64,000 bases of DNA from Laetmonice hystrix (taxonomy: Eukaryota): assembly GCA_965235115.1 (NCBI GenBank), contig OZ249441.1:31310001-31374000 (forward strand). The letters are read 5' to 3'. Positions 627 to 62,629 of this stretch are shown here, in pieces (within the stretch, counting starts at the first letter, position 1; every line of letters starts with the position of its first letter). The notes under the pieces are model-generated. The model ran no database searches. It worked only from the letters and a program-made list of their open reading frames with translations, and was not told the DNA's origin. The position numbers and the translations under genes were made by a program.

Positions 627-2220
627 AGTAATAGCTTAGCAGGCGTGCACTCACGATCTGTGCTCCATTCTATATGTAACACACTTGGTCAACAGCTACC
701 TCTCCAATATTACATGTCTAACAACCTACCAGAACATATGAACGAGACAAGATGGAATCGAAAGATAATTTTCTATTTACAAGTTTAAAAAGCATAAATA
801 TCATACTTATTATTTTATTAATAGATGAATTCGGTGGTAGCACAACTGTGACCATTATTGTGTGCCGATAGCAACTGGTGTTTTAGTACCTGTCACAGTC
901 CTGACACTAGGTAAGCGACGTTAAGTTCCTATCGACGCGGCCCATCGATCCATTTCACGGCATGAACAAGAGAAATACTAATGCGGAACTGTCTTCTATT
1001 CCAATTTATTTTGAAATCGCCTCACGTTGAAAAACGACTGTTGACGCATCTATACCGACACTCAACATAGCGTATTAATTTACAAGCAAGAAATCCGTTT
1101 AAAAGATGCAAATTAACATTATCATTTACGTGCAGGGTTGATTATAATTACGCCACCGAATTCAGTCTTTCATGTTAGAAACTCTAGATCTCAATCAGTG
1201 TTTATCAAATCTCCACTCTGTATCACCGACCGAGTACTACGACCTCAGTCCTCTCCCTGCGTCAGTCCAACTCGGGAAACTTTGGTTTCAATCTTCATTT
1301 TTAACCATCCAGAAATTATTTGACCATACATGTAGTCGCCAACCTGATGCTAATCTATTCAAACGAAGCTTGTGTTAGTGTTTTGGTTCAAATGAAGTAT
1401 TGGCCATAATAAAGACCAGTACTGGTAGTTGACTAGGAACCTATTTCCATATAAATTGTTACTGTCAACATAAAAAAATGCTTGAACCATCAACTAGGCT
1501 ACTTCAGTCAGCAATTAGAGCTGGTAACATTACAATTTCTTATTTGTAGGTTCCACCTAAAAAGCCCAGGAGAACTACAGTCGACGTTGGAAAGCGATAT
1601 ATCATACCAATTCGATTTTCCATGCTTACAGGACCACCATAAGAAAATCTCCTCAGTGAGTCAGTGATGCGGGTCTTACAGCAAGTTTATTCTGTAAGTG
1701 GGGACTCTCCCGCTCGACTAAAATATCCCTTCTCAAGTGTTCTTAATGGGAATGTCTACAGAGACGGTTGGGAAACTACCGCCTGAATGATGAAAGTATA
1801 TATGAATGTACTCCCCTGTCATTCCAATAAACTAAATGTAATCCTCCCACACCAATCCCGTCTCAAGTCAGCAGCAGCTAGCCCACAGAGTACCTATATA
1901 TCTATTCTGTGGCTAGCCTATCTAAGTTACCAGAATAAGATGAGGCCCTTCACGCTGGCTCGCTACCACTTTCATCTTGTTAAATGCGCCCGCTTCAGCA
2001 ACATTTACATCACATCAGCGAGAGACACATTCACACACTCAGATCTGACGCCTGCATCAACTCTAAGATCGTAGGCTTGGCGTGGATTAAAGGTCAGCTA
2101 TGGTCTGCCTGATGTTACATAGACTAAAGTTACAAGGATGGCTCCATCAGAACGTGGATATCAAACACCTTTATTACCGCTACCACCGATACGAGGAGGA
2201 GGTTGTACTATGTACGGTAA

Positions 2221-2640
2221 GTTACCGTGTTATACTTGACTGTGCGCGGTGAGTCACCATGTTATACTGGACTGTGCGCGGTGAGCTACCATGTTATACT
2301 GGACTGTGCGCGGTGAGTTACCATGTTATACTGGACTGTGCGCGGTGAGTCACCATGTTATACTGGACTGTGCGCGGTGAGTTATCATGTTATACTGGAC
2401 TGTGCGCGGGGAGTTACCATGTTATACTGGACTGTGCGCGGTGAGTTGCCATGTTATACTGGACCGTGCGCGGTGAGCTACCATGTTATACTGGACTGTG
2501 CGCGGTGAGTTGCCATGTTTTACTGGACTGTGCGCGGTGAGTTACCATGTTATACTGGACTGTGCGCGGTGAGTTACCATGTTATACTGGACTGTGCGCG
2601 GCGAGTTACCGTGTTATACTGGACTGTGCGCGGTGAGTCA
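2221..2640. repeat. 32-bp tandem array A, 13 copies (ATGTTATACTGGACTGTGCGCGGTGAGTTACC)
   Basis: Exact 32-nt period with unit starts from 2227 to 2611; head-to-tail, no spacers. Confidence 0.98.
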
Positions 2641-2651
2641 CTATACAAATA

Positions 2652-2778
2652 TTGGATGGCGGCGAGTCCACTATACAGTTTACGGGACGAAGAAAAGCGA
2701 TAATGGACGAGGCGAAGCCGAGTCCATTATCGCTTTTCAGAGTCCCGTAAACTGTATAGTAGACGAGCTGCCATCCAA
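2652..2778 (+). other. Long imperfect hairpin with three tandem G.A mismatches and a GCGAAGC tip
   Basis: Position i pairs with 5430-i. Tandem GA/GA at 2664-65/2765-66, 2689-90/2740-41 and 2709-10/2720-21; GAA triloop at 2714-2716; weak outer extension to 2642-2789. Confidence 0.95.
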
Positions 2779-2982
2779 CACTTGCTATATTATACACCTA
2801 TAGAGGTCTATATAGGGCCTAAGTAAAATATTGATAATCCCATATAAATAAAGTCGAGAACACCCGCTTATGAAAATTATGTAGGTTAAACTTTAATGAA
2901 CACATTTTCTGTAACCATGGTCAATGTGACAATTGGACACATTAACTTTAGAACCCCATTAACTAGTTACTATAGTTAAATT

Positions 2983-3017
2983 CATCTTATCTTATCCATC
3001 TTATCATCTTATCATCT
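2983..3017. repeat. Degenerate (ATCTT/ATC)n microsatellite
   Basis: CATCTTATCTTATCCATCTTATCATCTTATCATCT. Confidence 0.7.
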
Positions 3018-3203
3018 AGAATTAGCCTGGGCAGCCGGGCAGGACTGCTCTTATCATTTAGATCTACTTTGACGTCGTCTCTATGGTTTCCAGAGCGAAC
3101 CGTCCAATATCATATTTTACCATCCAATATCAAAATTTTCGGGACGGTCACGTGGTACAAATGGACCAATCAGATTGCTTAGCTGGGCCAGGTGTATAAT
3201 ATT

Positions 3204-3478
3204 ATGTTATACTGGACTGTGCGCGGTGAGTCACCATGTTATACTGGACTGTGCGCGCTGAGTTTCCATGTTATACTGGACTGTGCGCGGTGAGTTACCA
3301 TGTTATACTGGACTGTGTGCGGCGAGTTACCGTGTTATACTGGACTGTGCGCGGCGAGTTACCATGTTATACTGGACTGTGCGCGGTGAGTTACCATGTT
3401 ATACTGGACTGTGCGCGGTGAGTTACCATGTTATACTGGACTGTGTGTGGTGAGTTACCATGTTATACTGGACTGTGT
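3204..3478. repeat. 32-bp tandem array B (same unit and orientation as array A), 8 full copies plus a partial
   Basis: Unit starts from 3204 to 3460 with a 32-nt period. Confidence 0.98.
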
Positions 3479-4561
3479 ACCGTATTAACGGTGGCGGCGA
3501 GCTCGATGTCAAACAAGCTGGACATACAGGAATTAATCGCTCAATATTGCCCTTGCTCGAGGTTGGAATGATGTCCCGTCCAACAAGTCTTGTAATGGCC
3601 GCCGCCAAACACTGGGTATCAAACACTGCGAGTAAACACGATTCAACCCCAGAGATTTACCAGTATTATATCACTTTCACTCCGGTCCAATGTCTGAAAA
3701 TGAATTTAATAACATGGATATAACATCTATATAGAGACTAACTCGCATTCATACTAACACAGGTTATATCAATTCACTATCAGATATCGTCCAGACCTGG
3801 GGTCGTACATATTCATTTATTCAGAATTTGGCCTGTGATGTGATGCTGCCAACATCGCCTACCGGAGATGCACCTTTAGCTCTGTCCGCCTCCAGTACCT
3901 TTTCTTTGACCGACAACCATTTTAGCTGCTTGGGACTGGCTGATACGTCACAGGTTGGCCTTCTCATTGACATGCGTGTCCATGGCAGACAGCTCATATT
4001 TGCCTTGAGACAAATCGTCAGATAAACCTGCTCATGTTGTCAAAGGATACTGACGATTGATAGCCCTCCTCACCAACCCCTGGCCTGACCAGAATAATTA
4101 GCTTAATAACGTCCGTCACTGACGTTTGCCGTCTCTTGTTGGGGTTCAAAGTACGACATGTTGGCATGCTGTCTACGGAGGTTACTGCCATTGCTGTTCC
4201 AGTCGTAGTGATCTAGCACCTGGAGGCATGGTGTTCGGACAGCAAGCCACTGCACTCTTCTATTTGCCCGCCATTTCCCTTTGCACTTAAATACGATGAA
4301 TAAACCATCAGACCCCGATGGCCACACGCGTGCAAGCCGGTAAACTTGATAATGTCGCCATTTCATGGTGCTCTGCATGACAGGCCACTTACACTGACGA
4401 CCGTCTCAGTTTTTTCCCCTCGTGACGGCAGTGGCCACACTGCCCCCAGTGTTGTCAACTAACTGCTGCCAAGATTCAGCCCTGATTGGTCCAATATGGG
4501 CCTCGGCTGGCCAAAGGCCTCTGTAACCTCACCGTTTCAGTCAATTGCTCGAGGTCAATTT

Positions 4562-5699: not shown

Positions 5700-8600
5700 T
5701 GTGACCTTCACAACAGGAGTTGTGCGAAATTCCCATCCATTCCGTGAGGCCCGTACGAAGCTGGAAGGGTGAAGGCGTATTAAGAACATCTGAAAACAGC
5801 GACTACAAATGTCATCTCTTCAATTACGGAGAAAATTTGAACGACAGATTGCGAACTCTAGTGTTTGGGCATTAATTAAAGACGCAGTAAGAGATGTCAA
5901 ACTTTAGAGGCAGTAATGGAGGCAAACAATCATGGAAACCGTGGCAGTTGACTGATACGAGATCATTGAAATGCTTCCATGGCAGATATATCTCAAACAT
6001 AAGCAGAAGAAAATGTTTACTTATAGCTTACTTGATTGAAGAGTATCTCTTTTATTGACATTATATTCACCTGTCTCTCATTCTGGTGGCGCAAGGTCAT
6101 TTTCGTAACTCAAGATATTACGGTTATTTTTAAACCTTCTGTCAGAAAGTCGGACAGCCTACTTCAACTGGCTCTCTCCATCAAATGGGCCGCCAACATT
6201 ACCGTAGAAGGAGGGAGGAATCCTATAAATCAATCCATGTCCGCTATAATATCTGGGTTAAGTAAACGCAAAAGGTCATTGAGGCTTCTTTAAATCGTCT
6301 ACTCAGGCGTTCAATGGAGAGGAAATGAAGCCCAATACAGCTCGGTGAGCACGACGTCACATTGACTATAGTTCACTGGTAACCATAATGGTATAGCAAT
6401 GATACGAGAGTATTGGTGAGCCCAATACATCTCGGTGAGCACGACGCCACATTGACTATAGTTCACCGGTAACCATAATGGTATAGCAATGAGCTGATAC
6501 GAGAGTAAACACTCTCTCGGGACTGAGTTTTTGAAAGTCTCGAAGCAAATTCTGCCGGCGGCAGGGTACTTTTTCTACTCTTTAATCCAAATATAGCTGA
6601 GGGTTGTAGAGACCCATTGTGAAGCCAGCCCCAACCCTCCACCTGCAGACCGTTGGTGAATGGTCAAGTTCCTGTGAGGACCGTCCGTCTATCAGGAGCC
6701 ATCTAAGGCAGCTCAAACTGAGGAAGGCCTTTATCCCATTGGCAGGTCATTAAACCTGCTGGGTAGCTATGCTGAATCAGGCGTGATGGCGTACATGTTA
6801 ACTACCCACCATTTCCGATCCATTTAATGTCAATTGTAATCTTGTGTCAATGCTTCACTGCTAAGACCCACACTGGTTCTGCTCCAGAGGAGAGTCACTC
6901 TTTTACTAAGGTTGAATAGTGTTGAATATACAATGTAAACCACTACAGGAAATCTAGGTCTATACAGCATGGCAACTACCAATCTCCATGTTTCGCATCC
7001 CTAATGGAACAGGGATAGTGTATGAGCCTTCAAGTCGTCCCTATCTTCCAACTTCTTCACACAGTCTCTTAAATCACAAGTACCTGACCAAGTTATTTAT
7101 TTAGAACCATAAATAAAACTAATCACAAGAAAGATAATAAACTAAGATGAATGTCATCTCATATTTAAAAAAATAAGACCAGGGTTCAGCCTACTCGTTC
7201 CGCCCTCGTAGTAGTTATTTATATCCAGTGGTGGGGAATGACCACTAGATCCAGGACCTCATTAGGATCGGGAACAAACCACGTCTCGCCCACCACCGAA
7301 TCAAAGAGCAAGCCGCAGCTTAATTGCACCACAAGTCTAGGTACCACAAGGGGCCGGCCTATAATATTCATAGAGATACCAAGAGCGTGATGGATCGCCG
7401 TGACATTTTTAAATCTATTTTGTTAAACCAAATAGACCAAACGCCGTTGGAATTACACCCTTGGGAAATGATTCAAATACACTCAACTGGAGAGATAATT
7501 CCGGTCCCCACATATGTAGGCTCAGATCATACAAACCACTTTCACGCCATTTACTAACACAGAAAATTCTCGTCTAATCATGGGCCACTCTGTGGCGGAT
7601 GGACTACGTTGCTGAAGGCAATTTGTGAAAAGGCCGTGGTCCAATTGACGGAGTGGGAGTTGAGGGGGTGCTAAACCTACCGGTATTATGAATGTAAGGT
7701 GTGTCCTTGGCCTGTGTGCCCATTGGCGCCGCCAATAGAAGGTTCAGGAGAAGCAATGCAATCCTCACAGGTTTGGAAGCCAAGATGAGCTCTAACACAA
7801 ACATACTAGCAATAACTCCGTGCCCAGGTGGTAGCCGGGCTCGAGATGTCGGGGAACAGGCCCGTAATCTTCTCTCTCTCTTCTCATCACGGTATATCCC
7901 AAGGTCAGCGTGGACGGAGGTCATATTTGTACTCATGTCTCTCACTATCCTCGCCACAGAGCTGATAAAGAAGACCTTACCTCCTCAGTTCTCTATAATA
8001 ACCTACTTCAAAAATCGCCAACATAATGGAACAGAAACACTTCAACATTGTTTGGGAATATGGAGTTACCTCAACATGGGTAGGAGCATTTGGTTTGCAG
8101 AACGTCCCTGCACTCAATTAAGTACAAGCCTTGCCCGGCATAGCAGTGGTGAAATGGTACTGCCCGTGGGATGACTGATTTTATGCTTTATCTGTTCTGT
8201 ATTATCTCGTCCTCTTGTTGCCAAGTATGCCGGGTCGTCCGCCCAGAGCTCATCCCTTTATAAGTTTTACACAGCAAATAAACTTCTCCCGTCCTCAAGT
8301 GTGGCAAATCAGCTGTCTGTTCAAAAGGTGACACACTATGGAACGCCCATCATCTTCTCAAGCGCTCTGATCGCTTGTAATTTTCAGATTCTTTGTGCAA
8401 ACGGACAATAGTATCCAGTGGGCGCGACTGATTACATCGAAACCAACGATTGGAGCGGGTCGTCCAGGCCTCGTCCCTCGTCATGTACCGTGTATCTGGG
8501 CAGCCAATTCATCATATAGAACGGGCTACCTCAAGTGGAAACTCTCTGAAATCAGCGCCAGGCTTTGCTGTGTTCACTGAACAGCACCATTTCTCGGATC

Positions 8601-18807: not shown

Positions 18808-18996
18808 CAGACTATGAGGCCCGATACTTGCAGACCATGAGGCCCGCAGACCATGATGCCTGATTCTTGCAGACAATGAGGCCCGATTCTTGCAGACCAT
18901 GAGGCCCGATTCTTGCAGACCATGAGGCCCGATTCTTGCAGACCATGAGGCCCGATTCTTGCAGACCATGAGGCCCGATTCCTGCACATCATGAGG
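18808..18996. repeat. 23-bp minisatellite, 8 copies plus a partial (CAGACCATGAGGCCCGATTCTTG)
   Basis: Starts at 18808, 18831 (7-nt deletion), 18847, 18870, 18893, 18916, 18939, 18962 and 18985. Confidence 0.95.
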
Positions 18997-19867
18997 ATCG
19001 TTCTTGTAGACCTTTGGTTCGTGCCTTGGACCGATTGCCTCCCAGACATCGATCTGCTACCCGCACAGTGATGAGCAATGCTCACGACATGAAGATGATG
19101 GGGATGGGATGGTGGGGATGGACCGCGGAGGCGGCAGTCACCACAGCAGGCAACCTCAGGCTCATCACTGGCCAGTCCACGTTTGGATATCACCACTATC
19201 GATCTTGTCTGACTTTGATCCCTCTGAGATCCCAACCACCAATCTGTGGCGGGCTTGGATCAACACGGGCCGTAGGAGATCACCGTGACAAGCTTGAAGG
19301 GTCATTGAGGCTTGTTGACCAGAACGACTGGCCAACCACCCCCCTGTCTGAACCGAACGACTATTTGATGCCATACAAAGCCGATGGCGGGTTTGTGTTG
19401 CCGTTATCTTTCCTAATCTGCACACAGAAGACCTGCCGGAATGCCTATCCATCTCTGTCTAATTCATAGTCAATCGTCAAACCTTACTTCGACATCCGCC
19501 CCACGGCTCAGTACTGTCTTCAGAGAACAAACACTAAATTCCCCTCCATTGACCCATCCATTCCTGGATAAATGCAAGTCATTATGAATGAAAACATTAC
19601 TCAAATCTACTCGAGTAGATTATTTCTAACTCTGCATAGTCTGCCATCGACCGAATCGCCATATTGATATTTTCTTGTCTGAAACATTACGCTGCTCGAC
19701 TTCCTGCTCGACCTCCCCCGTCTCCATTCCCCCGAAACCCAACAACCGCCCGAGACTGCAATCACTATTAACAAGTACGGTACATGATTTCCGGAATGTT
19801 TCTCACATCTCTTGATCTATAAGCTGCCAAACTTCTGCAGTGAACTGATACGTGGAGCTCTCTAGTA

Positions 19868-58915: not shown

Positions 58916-59014
58916 ACAAATATGGCACTTGGTATCGTGCAATCGCGTCGTGCAATATCAGTTGCCATCGTGCCATAAATTTTCATATTGCACTCAACCA
59001 AGTGCCATATTTGT
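58916..59014. mobile_element. 99-bp miniature inverted-repeat element
   Basis: Perfect 18-bp inverted repeat ACAAATATGGCACTTGGT (58916-58933 and 58997-59014); three internal TCGTGC(A/C)AT copies. Confidence 0.7.
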
Positions 59015-61080: not shown

Positions 61081-62174
61081 AAGGCAAATCAGAATTTCAA
61101 ATTCTAAGAGATAAAATGGATGGATGTTTGGATGGATTGGTATTAAAAAGGCCGTGCCAAAAGGGCCAGTTTTCTCACTCAGTCCAACGCGAAGACAGTC
61201 ACAGAAGGGTTTCTGGTGAAGAGGCGTGTGAATTGCCTCTTCATCAGTACCCTATGTATTCACAAAGAGTAGGCAGCCAGTAGAGCAGCAGTCAGGGAAG
61301 TCAAAGCACATGGTTCGAGCACATCGAACATAGAGGTCCTTCTCCTTCTAGCTTCAGCAGGAATCACTTGTGGAAGAAATGTAGAATGAACCACCGCTTG
61401 CGTTTCACCGATTCTGATATTGCTGCGGCTCCAGCTTCAAGATCGGCTCTTCTTAAATTGATGGCATTATCCCGTTCACATCCAGTTCCTTCTAAAGCAG
61501 AGGTGGAAAATCTAGAGCAAGACCGGCCGGTGCCGAGAGCCTGATAGAGGAAGGCATGTAGAAGTAGAAGGTTATGTAAAGACAAACACTGTCATAGAGT
61601 ACAGCCTGTCATTGGCAAGCAGACAGGCTACCTCCTCAGTTCCCTGTCAGAACACGCCAAGTCAGCCGCTGGCCTGCAACTGCAAGCCAATGAACGAGCA
61701 ACTGATCCCAACCGCTGCTTACTCCTGCAATGAACCGGCTGTCAGTCCCCCAACCTCCCCTCCCCGCCACACATACACATGGGCCTACACAGTAGCGTTT
61801 CCACTCCACCTAGCGTCACGTCTCAGAACAGCCAATCTGTCCCATCGTTGCCCGGTAATCCGATGTGCCCGTAGCCCACATGGACGCACGAAGAATCATT
61901 ACAAACAAGGTCATGTATGGTATTGTGTTATCATACCATTCAGACCGTCTGTGCTGTAATTTGGGCTGGACGATATACATTTAAATGGCTGTATGGGGGA
62001 CATTAACGGCTAGAAACGAATCGTATGATAGTGACTGCTGGCCCAGTGAGAGGCAGGTCTGTGTGCCATCACCATTTGAAGATGGAGTGCAGGACTAGCA
62101 GCCAGGACCGGAGCTCTGAGGCTGGATATGTAATCCAGGAGCCGTTATGGCCGGGGCTGAGCTGTGAGCTGAAA

Positions 62175-62629
62175 CTGTGGGGCAGGAGTCGAGGGTTAGA
62201 GCCACGGGCTGGAGCTGTGAGGCAGGAGTCGGGGGTTAGAGCCACGGGCTGGAGCTGTGGGACAGAAGTCGGGGGTTAGAGCCACGGGCTGGAGCTGTGG
62301 GACAGGAGTCGGGGGTTAGAGCCACGGGCTGGAGCTGTGGGACAGGAGTCGGGGGTTAGAGCCACGGGCTGGAGCTGTAGGGCAGGAGTCGGGGGTTAGA
62401 GCCACGGGCTGGAGCTGTGGGACAGGAGTCGGGGGTTAGAGCCACGGGCTGGAGCTGTGGGACAGGAGTCGGGGGTTAGAGCCACGGGCTGGAGCTGTGG
62501 GACAGGAGTCGGGGGTTAGAGCCACGGGCTGGAGCTGTGGGACAGGAGTCGGGGGTTAGAGCCACGGGCTGGAGCTGTGGGACAGGAGTCGGGGGTTAGA
62601 GCCACGGGCTGGAGCTGTGGGGCAGGAGC
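62175..62629. repeat. G-rich 40-bp minisatellite, 11 copies plus a partial (CTGTGGGACAGGAGTCGGGGGTTAGAGCCACGGGCTGGAG)
   Basis: Exact 40-nt period from 62175 to 62615; copies nearly identical. Confidence 0.98.

Follow-up and report, generated by a model that had tools for sequence, protein, structure and literature searches.

In Helitron2 and in Helentron/HINE/DINE-1 transposons, the closest described systems to the locus reported here, the layout is one of asymmetric inverted repeats, the 5′ one lying 0-4 nt from the element end and its partner lying before a 3′ palindrome. HINE and DINE-1 elements are non-coding, with a variable centre that holds micro- or minisatellites and gene fragments, and they are associated with satellite DNA and occur as tandem head-to-tail copies. 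Insertion into TT targets has been reported for Helentrons, and Helitron2/Helentron insertions are expected to leave the target unduplicated and to have T at the 5′ boundary. Autonomous partners encode, between the same ends, a Rep/helicase with or without an endonuclease. The Helitron2 elements of Fusarium (FoHeli1/2) combine asymmetric inverted repeats with terminal hairpins in which a GAA triloop is closed by C-G. In Helraiser, a Helitron1, the 3′ hairpin is the transposition terminator, circles with joined ends are intermediates, and the chemistry is confined to the top strand, which is the only one to form and cleave junctions. A further precedent comes from the attC sites of integrons, imperfect palindromes recognised as folded single strands, in which unpaired bases give the two strands unlike hairpins and set the strand choice. 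Finally, the extra stability of sheared G.A pairs and of the GCGAAGC mini-hairpin in DNA is documented in published work, and GCGAAGC-type motifs occur at the single-strand initiation sites of phages and plasmids.

Here we describe a long hairpin in a 64-kb window, by which we mean the whole stretch of DNA that was analysed. Judged by its structure, which is what the class assignment is drawn from, the hairpin is probably the 3′-terminal palindrome of a rolling-circle transposon, non-autonomous and Helitron2/Helentron-like (HINE-type), inserted in a satellite array. A rolling-circle or HUH transposon was one of several options in the original prediction, and it is the option that the asymmetric repeats, the terminal hairpin and the modular build bear out. 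The element and its surroundings consist of the following features.

Positions 2215-3477, no strand: host array of a 32-bp satellite, given as context, interrupted by the element from 2642 to 3204.
Positions 2643-3203, minus strand: whole non-autonomous element, about 561 bp; the ends are good to 1-2 nt and come from the satellite register and from the ends common to the copy L012.
Positions 3190-3202, minus strand: 5′ asymmetric (subterminal) inverted repeat, 1-2 nt from the 5′ end of the element.
Positions 3064-3203, minus strand: conserved 5′ module, from BLAST and alignment against L012.
Positions 2853-3063, minus strand: variable centre, unshared with L012, with a short microsatellite-like run at 2982-3013.
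Positions 2787-2799, minus strand: 3′ asymmetric (subterminal) inverted repeat, 13 nt, abutting the hairpin and 100% complementary to 3190-3202.
Positions 2642-2789, minus strand (element sense): 3′-terminal palindrome of 148 nt with a 68-bp stem, from sequence, DNA folding and eight other DNA copies with the same structure.

The spacing of the satellite over the insert is 593, that is 32 + 561, and the register is kept on both sides, therefore about 561 bp have been inserted cleanly. The flanks of the element are TA at 2642-2643 and TA at 3203-3204; should this TA be duplicated target sequence, the element proper would be 2644-3202. The satellite itself comprises about 22 units (2215-2641 and 3205-3477) at 93-94% identity. 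Other tandem arrays in the window are found at 62168-62628 (40 bp x 11.5), 18808-19012 (23 bp x 9), 505-624 (20 bp x 5.5) and 6329-6492 (90 bp x 1.8). Two further ideas about the array were dropped. An origin of the 32-bp satellite from a hairpin arm gave a score that was equalled by 45 of 2000 shuffles and by 22 of 394 window controls, and a second hairpin formed from the array flanks (2100-2230 and 3470-3640) folds no better than shuffles.

Read along the minus strand of the window, the element runs from its 5′ end through the inverted repeat, the 5′ module, the variable centre and the partner repeat to the hairpin and the 3′ end. It is non-coding, and Pfam gave no match among its internal open reading frames (ORFs) or among the 51 ORFs of the window. 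The window as a whole is gene-poor and eukaryotic-looking, with four ORFs of at least 150 aa, and the 64 kb contain no tRNA genes, no Rfam families and no second copy of the hairpin tip. The 5′ module hosts no significant hairpin. It does contain the motif ATTGGAYGG twice (3100-3108 and 3120-3128); this motif has three matches in the 64-kb window, all of them within the element, and the third is the foot of the hairpin (2651-2659). These copies are reminiscent of Rep-binding iterons, which we take only as a lead. Elsewhere in the window, on the plus strand at 58916-59012, there is a second hairpin with an 18-bp outer stem (z -6), whose stem has a TC/TC mismatch beside an A.A and whose right foot ends in the roughly 13-nt terminal motif of the element's 3′ end. 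This shorter hairpin matches the element in sequence over only 11-16 nt (E 0.05-0.2) and may represent the 3′ terminus of a distant relative that lies the other way round.

The 148-nt palindrome can be read through in one frame on both strands, and gene callers consequently yield spurious ‘proteins’, which we used as probes for copies. An ORF search found 29 proteins and a profile search found 64; with cluster members included there are 79 hairpin-reading ORFs, P0074 excluded, from ERZ26222911, ERZ26168297, ERZ27289179, ERZ23498486 (a marine metagenome), GCA_022702875.1, GCA_022702835.1 and Logan runs. There are also eight further DNA copies (L012-L018 and L021), from five other assemblies or metagenomes. 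For most copies the states of individual sites are read from ORF translations, not from DNA. Genes neighbouring the copies have metazoan domains, and no Rep/helicase gene was found in the copy neighbourhoods examined. P0074 (ENA, 1764 aa) was considered as a transposase and rejected, as it is an ORF that runs through satellite DNA with a period of about 37 aa and ends at a hairpin fragment; it marks another copy of the family that adjoins satellite DNA. Exact-pattern scans of the JGI metagenomes and of IMG/VR with the hairpin core gave no match. Eleven viral-contig matches to the 19-nt tip were discarded as an unrelated prophage motif of GC-rich bacteria. This 19-nt tip, a GA-flanked GCGAAGC, recurs in a conserved and intergenic-looking stretch of the IMG/VR prophages L001-L003, L005, L006 and L008-L010 (53-97 kb), where it may act as a signal in RNA or in single-stranded DNA.

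The copies define the ends of the element and their arrangement. Similarity stops just past the foot of the hairpin in more than 25 ORFs, and for this reason the end of the element is placed there; foot and end are 0-2 nt apart in all copies. An inverted repeat close to the 5′ end and a 3′ partner before the hairpin are found in the window copy (13 of 13 nucleotides complementary) and likewise in L012, L013, L014 and L017. The sequence of the repeat pair differs among three lineages (window and L012, L013 and L014, and L017); within each copy the two partners match, the match being perfect in the window copy and L014 and covering 9-11 nt in the others. The 3′ repeat lies about 145-150 nt from the terminus, outside the 20-60 bp of Helitron2/Helentron elements, because the hairpin is itself 148 nt; the difference is one of size, not of order. 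Joined ends are also seen. L017, a contig of 537 nt, starts and finishes with an identical stretch of 119 nt, which makes it a 418-nt cycle, and at its junction the hairpin's final bases run straight into the 5′ end. The ORFs P0063 and P0058 cross the same kind of hairpin-to-5′-end junction.

Between the window copy and L012 about 140 nt are common at one end and about 210 nt, the hairpin included, at the other, with centres that differ: the window has its microsatellite-like run and L012 an ORF fragment. The L012 centre (L012 2467-2765, also seen in the ORFs P0029 and P0053) belongs to a subfamily in which this ORF fragment starts with ATG and has no Pfam match. It may resemble the N-termini of recombinase-associated proteins of invertebrates, and it is probably a captured gene fragment.

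The arms of the palindrome, 68 nt each, lie at 2646-2713 and 2717-2784, so that a position p pairs with 5430-p. The stretch 2652-2778 contains eight positions that are neither Watson-Crick nor wobble pairs, and six of the eight form three tandem GA/AG blocks on the plus strand.

Positions 2664-2665, partner 2765-2766: outer tandem mismatch, GA/GA on the plus strand and TC/TC on the top strand of the element (2664/2766 G.A, 2665/2765 A.G; C-GA-G context in both arms).
Positions 2689-2690, partner 2740-2741: middle tandem mismatch (2689/2741 G.A, 2690/2740 A.G), adjoining an A.A at 2691/2739.
Positions 2709-2721: tip, with a tandem mismatch 2709-2710/2720-2721 (2709/2721 G.A, 2710/2720 A.G; C-GA-G context in both arms), a 3-bp stem GGC/GCC and a triloop at 2714-2716; on the plus strand 2711-2719 is GGC-GAA-GCC, and the triloop is GAA on that strand and TTC on the top strand.

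The stem also has a C.A mismatch at 2669/2761 and a single G.T wobble at 2661/2769. The C.A and the A.A are private to the window copy; both positions are paired in other copies. This re-reading agrees with the original description of 2642-2789, that is with the eight mismatches, the three GA/AG blocks and the GGC-GAA-GCC tip. As a DNA fold the plus strand reaches -56.3 kcal/mol (z -16.2), which 0 of 200 shuffles equal, and the minus strand reaches -56.0 kcal/mol (z -15.0). It had been proposed that the plus strand folds better. What stands of this is that the GA/AG mismatches and the GAA tip are present on that strand; the computed energies of the two hairpins are equal under a generic nearest-neighbour model, which is blind to the special stability of sheared G.A pairs and of GCGAAGC. 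Any extra stability of the plus strand would thus be carried over from published work on such motifs, and is not computed for this hairpin.

To compare the hairpin between copies, the nine DNA copies (window, L012-L018 and L021) were aligned in the top orientation of the element. Pairing is seen in 85-87% of cells over the 62 pairs of the stem, and at 22 of these pairs both sides have changed and still pair, counts that overstate the independent evidence to the extent that transposon copies share ancestry. For the whole structure, with 24 double-changed pairs when the bubble columns are included, 0 of 500 shuffles reach the observed values, and when the partner is slid by 1-3 columns only 3-11 double-changed pairs are left. 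The mismatch sites are paired in just 5.6% (outer), 27.8% (middle) and 5.6% (tip) of cells in the nine copies, and the top strand reads TC, the bottom strand GA, in 45 of 54 half-sites; shared ancestry inflates these site counts too. The half-sites that depart from this reflect concerted flips in L012, one closure in L021, and decay of single bases, for the most part at CpG. The bases beside the mismatches vary between copies, and the Y-GA-R context is not strictly kept. A good example is L017, whose stem differs from the window in 26 of 124 letters, with 11 pairs doubly changed, and in which 62 of 62 pairs form and all three TC/TC bubbles are kept. Because relatives keep the three mismatches while the paired bases covary, the comparison supports a selected structure, the shape of which has itself been preserved, rather than a decayed palindrome. 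This had been the central suggestion of the original prediction, together with the proposal to align the copies and look for conserved GA/GA positions and covarying pairs, and both of these are seen in the nine DNA copies.

Within the young family, the states of the three sites were taken from a hand-checked table of 33 ORFs in top-strand view. For half of the half-sites in this table the amino acid fixes one base of the two; the two-base pattern is read directly in the DNA of L012.

Outer site: TC/TC in 21, closed to Watson-Crick in 2, flipped to GA/GA in 0.
Middle site: TC/TC in 13, closed to Watson-Crick in 10, flipped to GA/GA in 1.
Tip: TC/TC in 16, closed to Watson-Crick in 2, flipped to GA/GA in 5 (with the loop flipped too).

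By eye, P0026 gives a third closure of the outer site, which the table does not include. The near-identical P0004, P0030 and P0031 differ in the state of the tip. In P0058, also of the young family, there is a one-base frame shift in the loop that fits GAAA instead of GAA; a GAAA loop is the other known extra-stable variant of the mini-hairpin. Perfect pairing in other copies, which the original prediction regarded as evidence against it, is therefore found in part: the middle site is closed in 10 of 24, and the tip is closed in 2 and flipped in 5 of 23, while elsewhere the mismatches persist. Given this sizeable minority of closed or flipped young copies, a strict requirement for open sites is not proven. 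The changes in the young family are always a concerted, complementary dinucleotide and never random bases, which points to templated exchange between the arms. The best explanation for flips and closures is that one arm serves as template for the other, through template switching or conversion inside the palindrome, and such events are evidence that the arms meet in vivo.

What other kinds of element or process could produce such a locus? The flanking sequences bear on the first alternative, a TA-targeting cut-and-paste miniature element (a Tc1/mariner-like MITE) in which the palindrome is an incidental internal or foldback structure. Both young DNA copies (window and L012) have TA to either side, the satellite register fits a 559-bp element with a 2-bp duplication and a single base substitution, and no insertion into a TT target was seen. 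The base before the 5′ end is T in the window copy, in L012 and in P0024, and is not T in L013 and L014; on the 3′ side the last conserved bases are followed by N-T in all copies read from DNA (six) and from ORFs, and in L017 directly by the 5′ end. The TA flanks are thus compatible with such a MITE. The two outermost ends of the element, however, do not form an inverted repeat with one another, the partner repeat being internal and before the hairpin. In addition, head-to-tail and circular junctions exist, and conserved mismatches and covarying stems are without a role in elements of this type. We consider a MITE unlikely.

The second alternative is that the hairpin acts as RNA, either processed into small RNAs or as another structured transcript. 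A long, nearly perfect and covarying stem is what one would look for in such an RNA, tandem G.A pairs are stable in RNA as well, and the 5′ module contains promoter-like CCAAT and CACGTG motifs. Against this, the foot of the hairpin coincides with the end of the element to within 0-2 nt, as would suit a signal for the processing of DNA, Rfam gives no match, and the flips swap the strand that carries the purines without loss of the copy. Taken together these points make an RNA role decidedly improbable.

It could also be argued that the palindrome is functionless, the product of chance or of a replication error, with the GA pattern a coincidence that was fixed in one master copy. Conservation in the young family could come from shared ancestry alone, and closed sites are tolerated in some copies. 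However, the three sites persist in families whose stems differ, with compensation, at no fewer than 20% of positions. When a perfect 68-bp stem was subjected to simulated random substitution until it had eight mismatches, three or more GA/AG blocks arose in 0 of 2,000,000 runs and two blocks in 50. A chance origin is very hard to reconcile with these results. That the hairpin is the end of an integrated virus, parvovirus-like or of another ssDNA kind, hardly deserves consideration, and the same goes for a retron/msDNA-like product; a parvovirus-like terminus and an msDNA-like product had been listed in the original prediction. Internal bubbles in a terminal hairpin and flip/flop-like variants of the tip do recall such systems, but the hairpin is at one end only, the element measures about 560 bp, lacks coding capacity and contains neither viral nor RT genes, the 51 window ORFs have no Pfam match, the scan of viral contigs for the hairpin core yielded no match, and there are dozens of dispersed copies with variable centres.

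If the hairpin is the 3′ end of a Helitron2/Helentron-like element, as we favour, which of its strands matters? The wobble pairs, which occur on each strand, do not discriminate between them. If the Helitron2 convention is followed, the minus strand of the window, with TC/TC bubbles and a TTC loop, is the top strand, and by analogy with Helraiser, which uses the top strand, the transferred strand would carry TC/TC and not GA/GA. The earlier claim that the plus (GA) strand is the functional one appears weakened for this reason. That said, the complement of the conserved TC sites and loop consists of exactly the most stable non-canonical DNA motifs, and a GA/GCGAAGC complement would be surprising if being unpaired were all that counted.

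We know of no experimental account of how the ends of Helentron or Helitron2 elements are recognised, or of which strand they move. By analogy with the described systems, a Rep/helicase transposase may nick the 5′ end and peel off one strand. Once the 3′ region is single-stranded, the palindrome would snap back into the 68-bp hairpin and so mark the end of the element, where the strand would be cut 0-2 nt from the foot of the hairpin and then joined to the 5′ end. The three mismatches and the triloop would make the hairpins of the two strands distinguishable, with pyrimidine bubbles and TTC on the top strand and sheared G.A pairs and GAA on the bottom strand, and might therefore be conserved marks of recognition or polarity, like the unpaired bases of attC. 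They may also serve to interrupt an otherwise perfect long palindrome in the duplex. A bolder version, which we think rather doubtful, is that the three mismatches form a strand-discrimination code, by which the two strands would be read differently, for instance one as the signal for cleavage or termination and the other in priming or against cruciforms, and that the flip/flop of the tip reflects hairpin-templated synthesis in a transposon, similar to that of parvovirus telomeres.

The family offers a large, sequence-defined end structure with covarying pairs and three fixed non-canonical sites. With this, ‘what does the enzyme read?’ becomes a concrete structural question. The natural variation alone, in the form of concerted two-base flips and closures, indicates that information passes in vivo between the arms of a palindrome 148 nt long. 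The locus is also a further case of the entanglement of satellite DNA with rolling-circle elements.

In comparison with known systems, the element is like HINE/DINE-1 and Helitron2 in its asymmetric repeats, its non-coding variable centre, its association with satellites and its head-to-tail copies. It has a palindrome at the 3′ end as they do, though a much longer one: 148 nt with a 68-bp stem, where theirs have stems of about 5-20 bp, which makes it some 5-10 times the length of the described Helitron/Helentron 3′ palindromes. In contrast to theirs, it extends to the very end of the element and carries three conserved tandem mismatches, and its flanks read T(A)...(T)A-N-T in place of a clear TT target. 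The GAA hairpins of FoHeli1/2 are short and lie at the 5′ end on the top strand, whereas most copies of the present element have GAA on their bottom strand. A 3′ hairpin and joined-end circles are shared with Helraiser, but the short hairpin 10-12 nt from the end is absent here, and a canonical Helitron (Helitron1) was rejected, since the 5′-TC and CTRR-3′ ends and the A|T target are absent on either strand. A Replitron was rejected as well, as direct terminal repeats are lacking and the neighbouring genes are metazoan, while the hosts of Replitrons are plants, algae and protists. The likeness to integron attC sites is one of principle only; these are bacterial, are acted on by a tyrosine recombinase and have extrahelical bases, where the present hairpin has tandem mismatches. 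With the terminal hairpins of parvoviruses, which bound NS1/capsid genes and usually occur at both ends, it shares a terminal palindrome, asymmetric bubbles and two orientations of the tip, but there are no viral genes, only one end has a hairpin, and the flips mostly affect the tip and not the whole terminus. Finally, the plus-strand tip is an exact match to the d(GCGAAGC) mini-hairpin, and P0058 apparently has the GAAA variant, as judged from its ORF. Here, however, the motif caps a 68-bp stem, to which its own stability adds little, and its complement is on the strand presumed to be transferred.
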